DNA from: Vicugna vicugna | Taxonomy: Eukaryota | Assembly: GCA_013265495.1 (NCBI GenBank) | Contig: MU059829.1 | Span: forward strand, 868,001-932,000 | DNA length: 64,000 nt | Direction: 5' to 3' | Part shown: piece by piece, positions 8,101-33,420 of the stretch | Numbering within the stretch: the first letter of the stretch is position 1 | Layout: every line of letters begins with the position of its first letter | Made by a program: the position numbers and the translations under genes | Notes under the pieces: generated by a model | The model's database searches: none | The model's input: only the letters and a program-made list of their open reading frames with translations | Told to the model about the DNA's origin: nothing

Positions 8101-11100
8101 AGGCAAGTGCCATCCTTAGTGGGAAAGGGGAGGAGGGGGTGGGGCTGTGAGTTGTCTGAGGAGCTCCTGTGCCCAAGGAGTGGACGGAAATGGCCCAACG
8201 CGCCGACGGGAGAGGACGTGGGAAGCTACACGTAGCACAGGATGTCCTCGGCGCTGGGAATACGCAGAGGAAACGTTTATTTTTTTTTCAGTTTTTTAAT
8301 TGTAAAATGTAACATGCATCTGGAAAAGCACATAAAACACGAGCTTGACGAATTATTATAAAACAAGCACCCCAGTAACCCCGATGTAAGGCAAGAGCCG
8401 GGACTCGGCTGGCACGAAAGGAGCTCTCCTCCCCAGGCACGGCTCCCTCCTGCCCCCGAGGGCGAGCAGCCCTCCTCTTTAGGGCAATAACTTCCTGGAT
8501 TTCTTACACTCTTACCAGGTGAACATTCAATCACAGAGCTTGGTTTGTGCGTGCGTTTCAGATGTCTGCGTATCAAGAGCTGGTGGCGTGGCCGGGTGGC
8601 AGGACGTGCTCACGGCACTGAACCTCAGTGCACAAGGCCAAACCATTCTCCGAAGCCTTTCTGTGCCAACACACACTCCCGCAACCAGTGAAAGGAAGCC
8701 CCCGTCCCTCCACACCCTCCACACTCACGCTGACCCTTGATGATGCCAGTCATTCTTATATTATAGCCGTCCGGCGAGCGTAGTGGCATTGCCCTGGAGT
8801 TTCAATGTGCGTCTCCCTCATAAATAAGAAGTCGAGCACTTGTGTATATAATCACCAACCATCTTTTGTGAAGTGCCTGTTCGTCCTCTGCCTCTGTTTT
8901 CTGTCTGATTGTCTGTCTTTTCTTTAATGCTTTGTAGCAGTTTTTTTATATACTCTGCAGAGAAGCCCTTTGCCGGTTGTGAAGCATTGCAAGTATCTCC
9001 TCCTGTGTCGTGCCTTAATTTTTCACCGTCTTCATGGAAGCTCTCTCAGAGGTTTTCCACGTTATTTTAATGTGGCTAAATGTGTCACATATTTTCCTTT
9101 AGGGTTACTGCTTTTGTTCCTTAAGGAATCTTTTTTTTTTTTTTACCCCAAAGGCATGAAGAAAGGCTTATTGTTTTTCCTTTTACAGGCAGGCTTATGA
9201 TCCATCTGGCAGGGGTTTCCCATGCGTGTGTCTGGTGTGAGTCAAGGGTAACGTTTCTCCTTTTTCACCATGAATATCCAGTCGTCCCAGAACCGACTAC
9301 TAAGAAATCCACTTCTCCACTGTCCTGAGCCACTGCTGTCCCACAGCAGCTCCCCACACGCGCACGGGCCTCCCCCTGCACTCCTTATGCTGAGACTTGC
9401 CTGTTCGTCCTTGCATCTTCACTGCATAGTCTGATTACAGTGGCTCTATAATTAGCCTCATAATCCAGGAGAGCAAGTTCTCCCACCTTCTCCTCCAGGA
9501 GTGTCCTGGCTATTCTTGGATCTTTGAACTCCATATGAATTTTAGAATTAACTCATCAAGTCTCACTGAAAGAACCTCCTGGGATTTTCATGGATTTGGG
9601 TTAAATCTGCAGATTAATTTGGGGAAAATTGACATTTTTACAATGACCTTCCAATGCTTAAATAGCATTTCCACTTATTTGGGGCCTTTTTAACTTACAA
9701 AAATACTGTATTTATTGATGGAGGTATTGCACATAATTTCTTAGATTTATAACTAAGCATATTTTATGCTATTCTATATGGTGTTTTTATTTTATTTTAT
9801 TTGTTCCTGTTGGTTGCAATATACAGAAGTAAAATTCTTTTTTTGTATATTGATCTCATATATAGCAAATTTGATAAATTTTCTTGTTAATTCCTTTCAG
9901 ACTGCCTACATATAATCATAATGTCTGCAAACAGAGATAATTTTCCTTCTTCCTCTCTGACCCTTGCACTTTTTACTTTTTCTTATCTTGTCCCCCTGGC
10001 TAGCACCTCGAGCACAATGTGGAAAGGCGATGACAACAGCAGCTGTGCTGGTCTGACGGTCAATCTCACGGGACATTTTCAGTGCCTGACCTTTAAGTGT
10101 ACCGTTTGCTGCAGGCTTCTGCAGGTGTTCTTTGTCAGATTAAGGACGTTTCCTCCAGTTCCTTATTTGTTAGAAGTCTTATCATAAATCAATGTTGAAT
10201 TTTTCCAATATTTTTCTGCCTCTATAGCGATAATCTAATCATTGACTGATCAGATTACAGGAACATCTAATCTCTCTGGGCCTCAATGTCCTGGTCTGCA
10301 AATTAGGGAAAAGGATAAAATGCAACCATAAATGTGTTAGTTCCCCACCAAGGGAAAGATGATCAGCCTCAGAATCTTGGAAATGGATCCCATAGTATAG
10401 TCTCCTCAATTTTAAATTTGAGAAGCTGGGCTCAAAAGTTTGAGTGCTTTGCTAAAAATCACACATGTTCCTTCCAGAACACGGACTGTAACTAAAGTAT
10501 CCTGACCCTAAACATGCTGCTATTTCTTTTGTGTCTTATAACACACTGGATCCTTGAAGATAATACCAGAAATGAGTTCTTGGTAATTGTGATGACACCA
10601 TGATCCACCAGCAGAGAGGGGGCGTGAGAACGGGGGTAGAGGTCAGGGGGTTTGCATCCGGTCCTGGCTCTGCCTCTGGAGCTGCTTGCCCCGGGGGGTG
10701 TTGCCGGACCTCAGCTTCTTCATCTGGGGAGAAGATTATAGAGAAGTTGAAGTAGTTGAGCTCACAGGTCCATCTGGTCTCTAAACATCTATAGTTAACT
10801 GTACTTGGCTAGTGTAGTTTTGACTAATTCAAATATAAGTCACCACGTGTAGCTGGGGCTACCCTACTGGAGAGCACGACTGTGTAGTGCCAGTGAGACA
10901 GGGGAAGCCTCCTTGCTGTTGGTAGCTGGGACACATCTATTCATTCCAGGACTCAGACTTCAGGAAGTCTATACATGAACCTGAACACGTCCAGAGGAGA
11001 CTGAACAGGACTGTGAAGGGCCTGGAAACTAGGCACTGAGAAAAATGAGAAAAAGAAGGCTTTTAGAGAAGAAGAATGACTTAAAATGGGACTGCCTTTT

Positions 11101-22836: not shown

Positions 22837-23021
22837 GTGAAGTGCAAGGACTGCGGAGCCTTTGGAGTGAGCAGCCTCAGGTGCCCCATGAAGCGCTGGC
22901 ACAGGGCCCGAGTCCCCCAGCCCCTGGGCTCCACACGCGGGAAAGAGAACCTAGAGGCATGGAAGCTGCGGACCCCGCGGACCTCGAGCACGGCCGCGAG
23001 GGAGGAGGGTCAAAGGCCAAG
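22837..23021 (+). pseudogene. FAM90A-like zinc-knuckle exon relic
   Basis: Acceptor ccacag|GTG, donor AAG|GTGAGC. Encodes VKCKDCGAFGVSSLRCPMKRWHRARVPQPLGSTRGKENLEAWK, resembling the FAM90A N-terminal knuckle (LKCKNC.AFGH...RCPMK...GKENLKPWK, from memory) but lacking the His. No downstream FAM90A exons seen. Confidence 0.8.
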
Positions 23022-23084
23022 GTGAGCAGTGTGGGGGGTGCTGCCCAATGTCTGGGCTGAAATCTCTGGAAACCGTAAAGCACA

Positions 23085-23232
23085 GGTCTGATCGGATTAG
23101 GGACCCACCCTAAAGGAGTCACCTTAACCTAACCACAGTCCTAACTGCCCTACGCTCATGTACAATCACATTCTGATAAATTAAATGTTCGAGTTTCAAC
23201 ATATGAATTTGGGGGAGGGGAACACAATTCAG
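23085..23232 (-). mobile_element. MLT1 LTR fragment
   Basis: ggattagggacccaccctaa...ttcaacatatgaatttgggggaggggaacacaattcag. Confidence 0.7.
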
Positions 23233-23544
23233 TTTATCAAAGTTGCTTCATTCTTTTTTTTATTTTTATGTTGTAAAAACTTACTTTATTTTTTATTGAA
23301 TAAAACAATAATATCCATGAATTAAAGGGTACAAAAAATAAGATTGTTTGAGGCAAGGAGAAATGGTAACTAATGGACTCTGTCCTCAAATTGGATTGAA
23401 AATAATGAGAGGCCGGCTGTTGGAAATAAAGGGAGTTCAAAATTTTAGCATTTTTATTTTAATTTAACTTTAAGTTTGGGTCATACTACGTTGTATTTAA
23501 ATGCTAAGAGGAGGTGGTTCAGAGAGAGAGAGTTTAAAATAAAG

Positions 23545-24565
23545 TGTGTACATTGTTTTACAACTTATACAACTCAATATCAAAAACCAAACAATCCAAT
23601 TAAAAAGTGGGCAGAGGATCTGAATAGACATTTTGGTTGAGAAGAAATACCATGGCCAGAGGCCCATGAAAAGATGCTCAGCATTACTCATCACCAGAGA
23701 AATGTAAATCAAATCCACAATGAGATACCACCTCGCACCTGTCTGAATGCCCTCATGAAAAATCCTACAAATAAAATAGGTTGTCTAGGATACGGAGAAA
23801 AGGGAACCCTGGTACACTTGTTGGTGGGAGTATAAATTAGTGCACTGCTATGGGAAAGGGCACAGAGAGTCCTAAAAGGCTAAACATAGAACTACTATGT
23901 ATCATCCAACAATTCCACTCCTGGGTATATAGCTCAAACACAATTTTGAAAAGAAACGTGCACCCAATGTTCACATCTGCATTATTTACACTAGCCAAGA
24001 CATGGGAGCAATCTATGTGTCCATTAACAGATGAATGGATAAAGAACAAGTGGTGAGTACATAATGGAATATTACTCTGTCATAAAAAATAAAATAAAAT
24101 TTTGCCATTTGCAACAACATGGATGGACTTGGAGGGTCTTATTATTAGAGAAATAAAGTCAGACCAAAAAAAAAGATGAATATTGTATGCATTCACTTAT
24201 TGTGAAATGTAAAAAAAGTGAAGCAAAGAAATGAAATAAGAAAACACAAACAGATTTACAAATATAGGATACAAACTGGGGTTTACCAAAGTAAAGAGAG
24301 AAGGGGGAGGGGCAAATTAGAAATAAGAGATTGAAAGCTACTAATTACTATGTATAAAATTTTAAAACTTTTACCTCCATTAACAAAAAAGGGAAAAATT
24401 ATAAAATTTAAAACTTAGCTACAGGGGTAAATTTTACCACACAGGGAATATAGGCAATATTTTATAATGACTTTAAGTAGAGTATACTGTTTAAAATGAT
24501 TAAATTACCATGCTGCACACCGGAAACTAATATAACACTATAAATACTTAAAAAGTAAAAATAAA
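23545..24565 (+). mobile_element. 5'-truncated LINE-1 (ORF2 end and 3' UTR, cetartiodactyl type)
   Basis: caatccaattaaaaagtgggcagaggatctgaatagacat, aatgagataccacctcgcacctgtc, caattccactcctgggtatat, acatggatggacttggaggg, cacagggaatataggcaatat, then an A-rich tail. Confidence 0.9.
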
Positions 24566-25599
24566 GTGTATTGGTTTTTAATTATAATGTACATTCTGCC
24601 ATGACAGGAGACAGCAGGAAAGAACACAAATATAGAAATCAATTACCCAGCTGAGATTAAAAGCAACTCACTTCCTTTTATGAGGGAGACGGCATAAGTA
24701 ATGAATGACAGGACAGGAATTCTGTAAATCTTGTGGTGGAAAGTATCCACCCAAAATTATCTATTTCATTTGTGAAATAGTTTACACACAATTTGACGAA
24801 TGTGAGTGAAAAGTGTGAGTCCTCAGAGACTGAGTGGTAATAGCGAAGGTTGAAATACTCTTTTTTCAAATCGAAGTATAGTTGATCTACCTTAATATTT
24901 TGGTTTCAGGTGAAATGAAATAAATACTCTTTAATGAGCATGGGCAATGGAACTGAAATGCCTGGCATAATAGGATTTTTAGGCATTTTATGACAAATAA
25001 CCTACATGTCCTCAGATATAGTGAAATATTACGCCCTCTGGTTTAAGTGTTTCCATTTTGGAACCAGGAATTTGTAGCTTAGAGAGCCATCTCCACAACC
25101 ATGAGATTTCCTCTCAAAGGTGAAAGTCAACTGTGAATGACCCGGAAGTAAAATTATTCACTGTATTTTACTACATTGGAGCATTGTGTGATTCCCCCAC
25201 TAACCAAGAAATAAAGTATAAAATTGTCTTCCCATTTTTTTTGCATAGTCAGTAAATTCCTAACATGTTCTTGGAAGTACTACGTGGCCAGTGCAAGTTC
25301 TTCGTTCCATTAATATACCTTATTTTGTCACCTCAGTATTTATATTTCAGATTTTCATTGTTCCTCACCTTTTATTTTTAATTCCATATTTCTCTCAGGG
25401 AATTCCAGCTTCCTTTCCACAGAATCCCATTGTGTCTGACACCCTGCTTATTGGGAATACCTAGAATGTTTCCCAGTACCCAGGAGGCACTCAGAATGGA
25501 GACAGGGATGGGTGTGTCTTTTCACCATCCCTCAGTAATGTCTTTACATCTCTGCGCTCCAACTTTGTGTGGGGGCTGCAATTGTGTATTAGTCTGGAA

Positions 25600-25878
25600 A
25601 AATCCAATCAAACTGAACAGGGCGTGTCTCCCGGGCTGAAACCCTACTGGACAGTTGCATCCATCGATGCAGGGTGTATCCCTGGAACATAGCCCAGATT
25701 GGATTATAAACCATCTCCCAGGTATAAAGGAGCTCAAACAGACATGCAATGCGTTGGCCCCAAGAAGAAGAAACTGGACAGTCTGGGACATTGGAGGACA
25801 AGAAATTAGCTGCTGCTTGCTGTGGAACTTGCCTCAGAATCTACTTGGCTTCACTGGCTCCTCCAATTTTGGGTTCTG
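25600..25878 (+). promoter_or_regulatory. Putative promoter and non-coding first exon of the ZNF gene
   Basis: CCAAT/DUX-like motifs at 25600 and 25696, GGGCGTG at 25621, TATAAA at 25723, strong donor TG|GTGAGT at 25878/25879, all upstream of the ZNF ATG exon. Confidence 0.5.
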
Positions 25879-28203
25879 GTGAGTTCTTCAGACTGGGAGC
25901 TGTGAGCTGTCTTCATTCTGTGAAAATGTTCCAAGTCCTATCTGTCTTAGACCCTGGTCCTGTCAAAGCAGCTCCTCGTGGCCTCTGAGTTCCATCGTGT
26001 CAGTGTTTCCCCATCTCCTCTTCTCGGATTCACTGTTCAAGCCCCTGTTCTTCAGTTCCAATGCTGCTGGCTTGAACGTATCTATTTATTTTAACTGCCT
26101 AACCTAAGACCCTAAACTTGTGCTGTTCAGGACAGTAACTAGCAGTCTCCTGTGACTATAAAATGTAAATGAGTGCAGTCAAATAACTAAGCTTCACATT
26201 CTGGGGACTGCTGTCAAAATTTCCAGTGGTCTGTCACCACCTGTGTGTGGCAGTTACTGCCTCGTACGATGCAGATACAGAGCCTGTCCTTCGACTAGGA
26301 AAGCGCTACTAGCACGCTGATCTACCGCTTCTGCTTCTCTTGCTGTGTTTGTAAATACTTCCTTTCTGCTTCTCTGAATTAATTTCCTCTTAGAACATCA
26401 AGTGATGTTCTTCATTTTATTTCTTAGGTGTCCTGTGATACTTATTTCAAAATAATTATCTCAAGATACAATAAACCTCTTGAGAGGTTTATTTTCATTC
26501 TTCCCAAACAGTAATATACATTAGCCTCCTCTGGTGCCTGTGGCTTGAAAGATGGACGTAGCACAGGGCTGCCAAGCTTCCATCTTCTTCCCACTTCCAG
26601 GGCTGCCCTTCTGCCTAGGCCTGGGGGTTCCCTGGATACCAAGTAGGGGTTTACATGGTCCTATTTTCAACAGAAAAAAGATTCTAAGGGGAAAACAGAA
26701 TGCTTCATCTGACTCAGAAATTTGCCTTGACGTCAAAAACCAAAGGTATTCCGTAGCCAACTTTTGATCAGTTTTCCTGGACAGTCGTTCCCCTTTGGAT
26801 TTTCCCAAAGGCTCTAGGTAATCCAATCATTGAACTGTTTCCTCGAGTGTGTCCTTAAGCGTTGTGAATTTTTCCAGATTCTTCACAAGTTAGCAGATTC
26901 TTGCATTAATCTAGGGCTTCCTCCTAATTGAAGCTGGTAACCACACGATCAGTTTGATTGTGAGAAGAGGACAGGAGAGCAGGGACTTGTGAGCAAACAT
27001 TGTCAGAGGGGATTTCTGTTTCAAGACAGATGGGATGCAGTGAGAGGACTGGCTGCCACTGTATCGAGAGGTTTCCCCTAAAACTGGGTGATAAAAATGA
27101 AGAGACATTACGATGTTTGGAAAGTGGGGTCAATACACTAGAAGCTCCCATGCGTTAGAGAATGGGTACAAGGAGTCATTTTGTGAACATGCAAGAGGAA
27201 AAAGGCTGTAATAAAAGGCAGCTTCTGATTATTAATGTTTGAGATCACATTACAGTAAACCCTAGGGAATCTTTGTTATGCAAAAAGAATTTGAGCACAG
27301 GACACCAACCAAGCAAAATTAAACACTATCTGTTCCTTATCCTAGATGTGTAACTTTGTCATATGCTGAAGTCTTTGGAACCTCTGCATGTAATTGGAAA
27401 TTTGTAAATAAACCAATTTCCTCTTAAACCTCAGACAGTCCCTGTTGCTGAGTATCCTTGGCCTGGAGGGTAGAGACAGCCCGTGGCAGCGACACCGTGA
27501 CTCGTACTTCTGCTCCTTTCTGGTGCAGGGATGCTAGGGACTAGACTGGCGGGATGGGAGCCATGGCTCCTCCCCACGGAACAAGTCCTTGAATTAACTA
27601 CATCATAAGATAGATTCTTAGTAGATTGACTTCCAAGTCCACGGGAGACATCCCTAAAAGTCAGGGTTGAGGGAGAGCTGGAAGGGAGTGAGGTTCCAGA
27701 AGGCTGCCAGGGGTGTTGGAGAACCACTGTTGGTTTCCTAAGGCAGAAGTGATCTGAGGAATTCCACAGTGTTTACCCACCGGAGAGAACCTAAAACTGC
27801 ATGTGCCACGAGTCAAGTTTCCCTAGGTTTTGAATTAGGGAGGACACTGAATAATTCTGGATGCCACAGGAGAGTTAACAAACAAAAGTGGATGCCTAGC
27901 ACCTTCTTACTTGTAAGGTGTCTGTACGTTGAGTTTCTGCATGAGTAACTACAGCCTCAGCTGTCTCACATGTGACTGTGGGGGAGGAGAGACTGCGTGT
28001 TATTCTTAGGATGCACCCCTTGTTTCTGTTTGGAGGGTGGGGGTCCCTCCCAGATGAAGGTCTGGGGCTTCATTTCAGGTGGGTCTGAGAGCTGCAAACG
28101 GGGCTGGAGTCTCATGACTGTTCTTCATCCTCAGATTTGACTGCTTGGTGCTTCGATTGGCTGTGAGTGACCCAGAGAACGACTCCTGGAAACAGTTCTG
28201 ACA

Positions 28204-32827
<4,624 letters not shown>

Positions 32828-33414
32828 CCCACGCGGACGCGCTCAGGCATCGGCCCCCTCAGTCAGGACAGGCATGCGCGCGTGGCAGCGGCTCCGCGTG
32901 CCCACGAGTGACTGAACGCAGCGCAGGTGTCCGCAGCACCAGCTCTCGACCCTGAAGAACCCAGGCGGCTTGAGCAGAGGCGAGCCCCTAGTTCCTCTTT
33001 GACACTTACTGTTAAGCGTGAGCAGACTGCACATGCAGCACCAGGAGGCCTGTAATCTCTCTGCAGGGGCATTCAGCCAAGCGCCAGGACTGATGAGCGC
33101 GAGAAACTCAGTGGAAGAGGAAACACTAAAGGTGACAACTGTGAAATACCAAAGCAAGCCGAGGAGCATCGACGCGTACTTGTAAATAATTCAGCCTGAA
33201 GAAGTGTAAACCCTGAGAAATACTTCACTCACAGAGCGACCCCTCCGGCACGTGTGAGGATCCAGACTGCACAAAAGCCCCTCAGTGTCCTGAAGGAAGG
33301 GACGTCTTCAGCGGTCACTTATTTCCTGGTCAACATAAAACGCTCACGTGGAGGCTGTAGCAATCTTAAACCAGAATGGAACTAGAGATCGATTTCATGT
33401 CAGAAATAAATCAG

Positions 33415-33420
33415 TATGTA
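33415..33420 (+). terminator. Candidate ZNF polyadenylation signal
   Basis: AATAAA about 590 nt after the stop codon, following decayed finger remnants. Confidence 0.45.

Follow-up and report, generated by a model that had tools for sequence, protein, structure and literature searches.

Gene identity and organization

The stretch of vicuña DNA analysed here, a window of 64 kb to which all positions refer, contains the single-copy camelid orthologue of ZNF705, a KRAB zinc-finger gene of six exons that encodes 432 amino acids in an intact reading frame, with splice sites in phase (Table 1). Downstream of the KRAB-A and KRAB-B exons, a single exon encodes the C2H2 fingers, of which seven were recognized as canonical by script and the eighth (H-x4-H) by eye from the translation; the Pfam domains KRAB and zf-C2H2 are recorded for orthologues of this gene. 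The top match of the zinc-finger exon is dromedary ZNF705F (92% identity), with further ZNF705A-like top matches in alpaca, whales, hippo, rhino and bat. The gene adjoins XKR5; ZNF705 is followed by an XK-related gene in dromedary, alpaca and minke whale and, in the last of these, preceded by a zf-CCHC_6 gene. These matches, domain exons and neighbours support the original prediction of a KRAB zinc-finger gene and place it in the ZNF705 family. Judging from a dN/dS of 0.375 against dromedary, the camelid gene is under purifying selection.

The human genes ZNF705A/B/D/E/G at 8p23.1 likewise encode KRAB-A, KRAB-B and a C2H2 array and likewise adjoin XKR5 and a FAM90A-type gene, but they form a multi-copy family, in contrast to the single camelid copy. 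The KRAB domain of the human ZNF705 proteins represses very strongly (10.1101/2023.05.12.540558).

Only one distant ZNF705 paralogue was found by a search with the linker protein sequence. This nearest paralogue, on the same contig (762998-763291, minus strand), is alignable only from window position 27734 onward; the 20 kb examined there contained no DUX consensus and no comparable promoter, and the paralogue is uninformative on the DUX-like motifs described below. The linker-based protein searches recovered orthologues from camelids, cetaceans, hippo and rhino only, and did not recover a ZNF705 orthologue from cattle, pig, horse or dog. The rhino contigs extend only 1.1 kb upstream of the gene, short of the promoter.

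Table 1. Features of the ZNF705 locus; distances are from the inferred start site near 25750
Feature	Position	Strand	Details
Most conserved promoter block	25589-25627	+	TTAGTCTG; holds motif 1 and the KLF-like GGGCGTG box; centre at about -147
Motif 1, AAATCCAATCA	25600-25610	+	About -147
KLF-like box, GGGCGTG	25620-25626	+	Conserved; 10 bp downstream of motif 1
Motif 2, TAATCCAATCT	25696-25706	-	Single mismatch (last base); about -51, with the TATA box 17 bp downstream
TATA box, TATAAA	25723-25728	+	ATAAA core kept in 8/8 species (alignment A2)
Exon 1, putative non-coding	25750-25878	+	Start inferred from TATA position; end fixed by GTGAGT donor at 25879-25884
Conserved block of intron 1	26700-26960	+	Holds motif 3; alignment A5, camelids to whales, hippo and seal
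Motif 3, TAATCCAATCA	26819-26829	+	Perfect DUX4/DUXC consensus, 'CC' flavour; about +1.07 kb
Exon 2, 5' UTR and start codon	28135-28215	+	ATG at 28204-28206; encodes MQPL
Exon 3, KRAB-A box	29882-30008	+	127 nt; local translation and splice sites
Exon 4, KRAB-B box	30713-30808	+	96 nt; peptide matches dromedary ZNF705F and alpaca ZNF705A-like
Exon 5, linker	31291-31373	+	Splice sites and orthologue comparison
Exon 6, linker and eight C2H2 zinc fingers	31847-32827	+	Stop TGA at 32825-32827

Promoter structure and conservation

Alignment of eight Laurasiatherian species from four orders (alignment A2: the window, alpaca, dromedary, hippo, two whales, bat and seal) shows the TATA box, exon 1 and its donor at the same positions throughout; the sequence of exon 1 is also conserved, and the donor is GC in bat. 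The acceptor, ATG and donor of exon 2 are kept in all eight species, and the annotated dromedary and alpaca coding sequences begin at this ATG. Given the conservation of the TATA box, of exon 1 with its donor and of exon 2 with its ATG, the start site near 25750, as deduced from the position of the TATA box, is well supported, and the promoter, exon 1 and splice layout originally proposed hold across the eight species. The promoter is of the TATA type and is CpG-poor. Invariant runs in the alignment are found at 25589-25596, 25601-25610 and 25617-25622, and in bat the homology to the promoter begins at the block containing motif 1.

Both this promoter block and the conserved block of intron 1 are single copy: searched against this genome, the promoter and intron 1 stretches gave self-matches only. 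These results led us to reject an origin of the promoter from an LTR or another repeat; the genome search is sensitive to repeats of about 70% identity, which it detected for 23070-23250 and 10130-10243. An internal duplication was also considered as the source of the motifs but is not sufficiently supported: apart from short internal matches of 12-14 nt, the only likeness is a weak one of 33 bp, in inverted orientation, linking 25575-25606 with 26865-26897 (score 14.5, null 10.0 +/- 1.3, P about 0.003). Known RNA families gave no match in 24500-29800. Three 'reproductive system metagenome' RNA runs contain 6-9% of the words of 25500-28300 and an equal share of those of 31780-33420; as the first stretch is intron-rich and the second all exon, this was not counted as a sign of spliced mRNA.

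DUX-like motifs

Three DUX-like motifs lie in the promoter and intron 1, and they, together with TATAAA at 25723 and GTGAGT at 25879, are found exactly where the original prediction had placed them and on the same strands. That prediction also relied on the rarity of the 9-mer that the motifs share, AATCCAATC, whose three copies in the window all fall within 25600-26829, against 0.43 expected in the whole window. However, for ten different non-trivial 9-mers of the window the three copies all lie within 1.3 kb of each other, and one of these 9-mers, CTGGACAGT, falls in the same stretch as the motifs; the rarity was thus overstated and is not significant post hoc.

Matching to the DUX consensus is a fairer test. 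With TAAYBBAATCA at up to one mismatch as the pre-specified pattern and local dinucleotide shuffles as the null, three matches are observed in 25400-27000 against 0.40 expected (P = 0.005), two against 0.04 in the 210-bp core promoter and eight against 2.2 in 23000-28600 (P = 0.0075). Two of the last eight (at 23089 and 23125) lie within an old interspersed repeat, and a DUX-like word at 10231 is also located in such a repeat. The perfect 11-mer has 2145 copies genome-wide, or about one per 0.95 Mb.

Conservation across species is above background for motifs 1 and 3 and ordinary for motif 2. Motif 1 ranks 3/391 among 11-mers in conservation, and its core AATCCAATCA (25601-25610), at ten bases the longest invariant run of the promoter, corresponds exactly to DUX positions 2-11. 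Consensus position 1 is A, G or C and never T in 8/8 species, and the motif does not contain TAAT. A second copy of the promoter in bat reads AATCCAATGA, with CCAAT kept and the AATCA half of the DUX site broken. Motif 2 (rank 110/391) is conserved no better than its surroundings: it reads TAACCCAATCT in whales, TAACCCCATCT in hippo and TAACTTAATCA in seal and is lost in bat, with the position-11 mismatch present in all artiodactyls and two mismatches in hippo. Motif 3 ranks 5/251 among the 11-mers of the intronic block and has one mismatch each, at different positions, in dromedary, hippo, sperm whale and minke whale. In harbour seal both motif 2 and motif 3 (TAATTCAATCA) are perfect DUX sites from which CCAAT has been lost, which argues against NF-Y as the factor recognizing these two sites.

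Comparison with known DUX targets

Human ZNF705G is a target of DUX4 (PMC11216401), ZNF705A and ZNF705E are 4-cell hub factors (PMC9691860) and ZNF705A/B/D/G rise at human genome activation (PMC11145015), in agreement with the earlier claim that ZNF705-family genes are among the cleavage-stage DUX4 targets; the reported activity falls at the 4- to 8-cell stage. The accompanying claim of a DUX4-like motif for DUXC is also supported in Laurasiatherians: the cattle DUXC ChIP motif is nearly identical to that of DUX4 (10.1101/2023.04.10.536281), and cattle genome-activation promoters are enriched in TAAYCYAATCA (10.64898/2026.03.05.709741, PMC12522504). DUXC has been reported in dromedary (PMC13558733).

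All four TAAT[T/C][T/C]AATCA flavours are bound and activated by human DUX4, with synergy between clustered sites; SELEX selects the consensus base everywhere but at position 5, and half-sites are inactive (PMC4730607). The vicuña promoter resembles DUX4/DUXC target promoters in clustering a perfect site with two one-mismatch sites at a TATA-type, CpG-poor promoter, and the perfect site, TAATCCAATCA, coincides exactly with the cattle de novo motif and with one of the flavours that human DUX4 binds in vitro (10.64898/2026.03.05.709741, PMC4730607). It differs from such promoters in that its only perfect site is intronic and in that both proximal sites deviate from the consensus, motif 1 at position 1 and motif 2 at position 11; these deviations count against DUX recognition because SELEX selects both positions.

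Proposed regulation and alternative explanations

The stretch is probably a conserved DUX-responsive promoter, and the predicted control of ZNF705 by a camelid DUX factor is plausible. The specific reading that we tentatively favour, and to which we give somewhat less than an even chance, is that this is a TATA-type ZNF705 promoter, with exon 1 and intron 1, that is activated at cleavage stages by DUXC. DUXC, the Laurasiatherian counterpart of DUX4, would switch on ZNF705 in the cleavage-stage embryo through three double-homeodomain sites acting together at about -147, -51 and +1.07 kb. At the -147 site, a KLF factor bound to the neighbouring GGGYGTG box would probably contribute as well, and NF-Y may recognize the CCAAT core of the site. 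Here we infer both the binding of DUXC and the embryonic expression.

NF-Y and KLF acting at motif 1 are also the basis of a serious alternative, in which the stretch is a classical promoter of CCAAT, CACCC/KLF box and TATA and the DUX likeness is incidental; we regard it as unlikely overall. NF-Y would occupy CCAAT in motif 1 and, in camelids, its inverted counterpart in motif 2, with a KLF or Sp factor on the GGGYGTG adjoining motif 1. The layout is that of beta-globin-type promoters, which likewise combine an invariant CCAAT, a nearby KLF-like GGGYGTG and a TATA box downstream. The CCAAT of motif 1 is invariant in the eight species and persists in the second bat copy, where AATCA is broken; DUX position 1 of this motif is never T; and the conserved KLF-like box lies close by. 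Expression could still be embryonic under this alternative, since NF-Y and KLF motifs mark the open chromatin of cattle 2- to 8-cell embryos and are among the four dominant motifs of cattle open chromatin before genome activation (10.1101/2023.04.10.536281). The details fit less well. The bases preceding CCAAT in motif 1 are A-T, the sites lie at about -147 and -51, and the distances of the boxes to the TATA box are unusual for the beta-globin type. NF-Y sites typically have a purine pair 5' of CCAAT and are usually located at -60 to -100. Moreover, CCAAT is lost from motif 2 in hippo, seal and bat and from motif 3 in hippo, sperm whale, minke whale and seal, whereas in seal these two further sites keep the double-homeodomain frame as perfect DUX consensus, and in motif 1 the invariant run coincides exactly with DUX positions 2-11.

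Homeodomain factors other than DUXC could instead bind the sites and direct embryonic or germline expression, which we consider improbable. Candidates are K50 paired-like readers of TAATCC (of the OTX2, PITX, LEUTX or TPRX type) and DUXA or PHOX2A-type factors, which recognize nearly the same double site. In camelids TAATCC occurs within motifs 2 and 3, and whales and seal retain a further copy at 26750, within the intronic block of motif 3, where hippo has TAATCT. The four dominant cattle motifs include that of OTX2 (10.1101/2023.04.10.536281), and DUXA and PHOX2A have been named as possible binders of TAAYCYAATCA in cattle (10.64898/2026.03.05.709741, PMC12522504). However, TAATCC is not kept at motif 2 in whales and hippo (TAACCC) or seal (TAACTT), nor at motif 3 in seal (TAATTC), while the double-site frame of both motifs is kept across species, and motif 1 lacks TAAT altogether. 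More improbable still is that the DUX-like words have no regulatory meaning and are chance or ancestral relics, the conserved block serving another purpose or the start site lying elsewhere, for instance immediately before exon 2. Shared 9-mers with three copies inside 1.3 kb are indeed common in the window (the ten cases noted above), DUX-like words also occur in old repeats (23089/23125 and 10231), and the homology of the same-contig paralogue, which begins only at 27734, does not extend to such a promoter. Against this stand the fixed positions of the TATA box, exon 1 and donor in eight species of four orders, the place of motifs 1 and 3 among the top-conserved 11-mers of their blocks, the single-copy status of the promoter and intron block in a search that detects repeats of about 70% identity, and the lack of known RNA families in 24500-29800.

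Biological implications

To our knowledge, few targets of DUX-family factors are common to several mammalian orders. The DUX network is mostly thought to turn over quickly, often by way of retroelements. Here, DUX-type sites persist in species ranging from camelids to a carnivore in a single-copy promoter with no recognizable repeat, and the human relatives of the gene downstream of it are DUX4 targets. The feedback-repressor role originally suggested for ZNF705 would be purely speculative. For this idea there is a precedent in mouse Zfp352, whose DUX-induced zinc-finger product contributes to dissolving the totipotency network (PMC10281998), although its gene is unrelated to ZNF705.

On the sequence comparisons made here, the annotation of the locus is well supported and its regulatory part is a reasonable hypothesis. 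A broader view, speculative and in our judgement doubtful, is that ZNF705 is an ancient core member of the DUX regulon, with sites that predate the split of camelids, whales and carnivores, and that it encodes a DUX-induced KRAB repressor that helps to shut down the cleavage-stage programme, a feedback arm common to primates (through DUX4) and Laurasiatherians (through DUXC). If the regulatory hypothesis is confirmed, the ancestral DUX regulon would gain a conserved KRAB repressor, and there would be a simple, testable promoter at which the input of DUXC, NF-Y and KLF could be compared at genome activation in livestock.

Gene structure and start site

The locus holds a six-exon KRAB zinc-finger gene on the plus strand, whose 432-residue product equals the annotated dromedary protein in length and layout. 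The zinc-finger exon has as its top matches zinc finger protein 705F from Camelus dromedarius (92% identity) and an alpaca ZNF705A-like protein, which supports the ZNF705-family assignment, and its dN/dS of 0.375 against dromedary indicates a living gene. Identity to the window is 98.8% over 3.3 kb for the alpaca locus and 95.2% for the dromedary locus; an XK-related gene lies downstream in both, and a zf-CCHC_6 (FAM90A-type) gene lies upstream in minke whale.

Features of the ZNF705 locus (window positions)
Feature	Position	Strand	Description
Motif 1	25600-25610	+	AAATCCAATCA, read in window
Motif 2	25696-25706	-	TAATCCAATCT, read in window
TATA box	25723-25728	+	TATAAA, read in window, kept across species
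Exon 1	about 25750-25878	+	non-coding
Exon-1 donor	25879-25884	+	GTGAGT, read in window
Motif 3	26819-26829	+	TAATCCAATCA, read in window
Exon 2	28135-28215	+	5' UTR, ATG at 28204 (MQPL)
Exon 3	29882-30008	+	KRAB-A, 127 nt
Exon 4	30713-30808	+	KRAB-B, 96 nt
Exon 5	31291-31373	+	linker
Exon 6	31847-32827	+	linker, eight C2H2 fingers, stop

The TATAAA element, the GTGAGT donor and the exon beginning at 28135 are all present where the original prediction placed them, and its three motifs were confirmed exactly in coordinate and strand. In a promoter alignment of eight species (window, alpaca, dromedary, hippo, sperm whale, minke whale, the bat Eptesicus and harbour seal), the TATA box and much of exon 1 occupy the same positions in all eight, as do the exon-2 acceptor, ATG and exon-2 donor; the exon-1 donor position is kept throughout, as GT in seven and GC in bat. 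Bat homology to the window starts at 25577, on the edge of the motif-1 block. From this sequence comparison, transcription very probably starts near 25750. An alternative start may lie near exon 2. CpG content rises around 28000-28700, and exon 2 itself contains a textbook NF-Y box (AGCCAATCG, minus strand) at 28155-28163, 41 bp before the ATG. In three RNA runs with the label 'reproductive system metagenome', 6-9% of the promoter-to-exon-2 words are present and 7-9% of those from the all-exon 3' stretch; because the shares are equal for intron-rich and exon-only DNA, they give no sign of spliced mRNA.

The promoter region is CpG-poor, and an Rfam search of 24500-29800 matched no family. The promoter and the intronic stretch each occur once in the 2.03-Gb genome. 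As the same search picks up repeats of 70% identity elsewhere, the idea that the promoter is a recognisable repeat, LTR or otherwise, was rejected.

The annotated alpaca protein (L004, 482 residues) has one finger fewer and a different C-terminal tail from the 432-residue window and dromedary products (window exon 31847-32827), which suggests an indel, a frameshift or an annotation problem in that assembly. The annotated ZNF705-like proteins of sperm whale (L005) and harbour seal (L007) have long, odd N-terminal extensions encoded by exons far upstream of the conserved promoter, including a CCHC-knuckle-like piece in sperm whale, and look like fusions with the neighbouring FAM90A-type gene. 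In E. fuscus the promoter and exon 1 are present twice, the second time (L006:25715-26080) ~20 kb downstream; this further copy has lost the motif 2 region, and its motif 1 reads AATCCAATGA, with CCAAT kept and AATCA broken. The two KRAB domains of the annotated bat protein suggest that a tandem duplication was merged into a single gene model. A KRAB zinc-finger paralogue occupies the minus strand of the window's own contig ~105 kb upstream of the window start (G000:C4693:758000-777999; L018, L019), with 44% identity in the linker and ~60% in an alignment from 27734 to the gene 3' end. Neither exon 1 nor the promoter has a counterpart there, and the 20 kb examined contain no DUX consensus; the promoter seems to have been left behind in the duplication.

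Enrichment and conservation of the DUX-type sites

Across the 64-kb window, the 9-mer shared by the motifs has these three copies and no others, where 0.43 would be expected. Its claimed rarity was overstated: the statistic was post hoc, and ten different non-trivial 9-mers in the window have all three copies inside 1.3 kb, so that the shared word by itself proves nothing. One of these ten, CTGGACAGT, has its only three window copies (25647, 25774 and 26777) in the same 1.2-kb stretch that holds the DUX-like motifs. A fairer test allowed up to one mismatch to the published DUX consensus TAAYBBAATCA and compared the counts with those in local dinucleotide shuffles, giving three against 0.40 expected in 25400-27000 (P = 0.005), eight against 2.2 in 23000-28600 (P = 0.0075; two of the eight, at 23089 and 23125, sit in an old interspersed repeat), and two against 0.04 in the 210-bp core promoter (25550-25760), a count reached in 0 of 400 shuffles.

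For conservation among orthologues, motif 1 ranks 3 of 391 11-mers and motif 3 ranks 5 of 251, within a 260-bp conserved intronic block, motif 2 being ordinary (110 of 391). Across the eight species the motif 1 core, AATCCAATCA (25601-25610), does not vary at all, and the 400-bp alignment has no longer unchanged stretch; the ~40-bp block around it holds two more invariant runs, TTAGTCTG and an ACAGGG followed by a KLF-type GGGYGTG box. On the minus strand, motif 2 reads TAATCCAATCT in camelids, TAACCCAATCT in whales, TAACCCCATCT in hippo and TAACTTAATCA in seal, and is lost in bat. Motif 3 is identical in window and alpaca and reads TAACCCAATCG in dromedary, TAATCCAGTCA in hippo, TAATACAATCA in sperm whale, TAATCCAAACA in minke whale and TAATTCAATCA in seal. 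An additional TTATCCAATCA lies between motifs 1 and 2 in seal.

The perfect 11-mer TAATCCAATCA has 2145 copies genome-wide against 743 for the reversed word, a roughly threefold excess; at about one per 0.95 Mb, a perfect copy within ~1 kb of a given start is uncommon. The excess is probably explained in part by repeats such as that at 23070-23250, an old interspersed element with at least 30 genome copies at ~70% identity, which carries TAATCCGATCA at 23089 (minus strand) and TAACCTAACCA at 23125 (plus strand) and, in its sperm whale orthologous copy, a perfect TAATCCAATCA. An inverted pair 16 bp apart, a perfect TAATCTAATCA (plus) and TAATCTGATCA (minus), lies at 10231-10257, at the edge of an interspersed repeat (~10130-10243) ~15 kb upstream of the ZNF705 start. 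In the intron-1 block, the stretches at 26795-26807, 26865-26897 and 26949-26960 resemble short parts of the motif-1 block (25575-25616) in inverted orientation (best local alignment score 14.5, null 10.0 ± 1.3). A homotypic site cluster, an old inverted duplication and chance are all candidate explanations.

Candidate regulators

The reading that we favour, tentatively and at a little under even chances, is a conserved TATA-driven ZNF705 promoter whose cleavage-stage activation depends on DUXC. DUXC would use the full site at motif 3 as well as motif 2, and perhaps also motif 1; KLF, and possibly NF-Y, would join it at the upstream block. DUXC is reported in dromedary (PMC13558733), its ChIP-seq motif is 'almost identical' to that of DUX4 (10.1101/2023.04.10.536281), and motif 3 exactly matches the de novo motif of cattle genome-activation promoters, TAAYCYAATCA (10.64898/2026.03.05.709741; PMC12522504). 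Human DUX4 binds and activates all four TAAT[T/C][T/C]AATCA flavours, shows strong synergy at clustered sites, is inactive on half-sites and selects the consensus base at all positions but position 5 (PMC4730607). None of the eight species has T at consensus position 1 of motif 1: seal has C, hippo G, and camelids, whales and bat all have A. The main rival, a CCAAT, KLF and TATA promoter with motif 1 as an NF-Y site, is rather unlikely overall. At motifs 2 and 3, the seal changes fall at degenerate positions of the DUX consensus, leaving it perfect and destroying CCAAT; in our view, no other sequence argument favours a double-homeodomain reader over NF-Y at these two sites as strongly as this drift does.

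Binding by homeodomain factors of another kind (OTX2/LEUTX/TPRX or DUXA/PHOX2A type) is improbable. OTX2, KLF, NFY and DUX4 motifs jointly mark ~80% of 8-cell open chromatin (10.1101/2023.04.10.536281). The readings involving DUXC, NF-Y/KLF and other homeodomains are not fully exclusive of one another; cattle data suggest that such promoters combine all four motif types. That the motifs have no regulatory meaning, or that the start lies elsewhere, is slightly more improbable still.

ZNF705 is already known as a DUX4 target in human: ZNF705G serves as one in FSHD myocytes (PMC11216401). ZNF705A/B/D/G rise at human genome activation (PMC11145015), and ZNF705A and ZNF705E are hub factors of the human 4-cell module with LEUTX and ZSCAN5 (PMC9691860). 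Among measured repressor domains, the KRAB domain of human ZNF705 ranks with the strongest (10.1101/2023.05.12.540558), a potency that would fit the idea of a feedback repressor, for which mouse Zfp352 is a precedent (PMC10281998). What is new is a camelid orthologue with a single-copy, non-repeat promoter and putative DUX-type sites whose conservation across four Laurasiatherian orders is partial. The result would not surprise a specialist; its use lies in annotation and in a hypothesis that can be put to the test.
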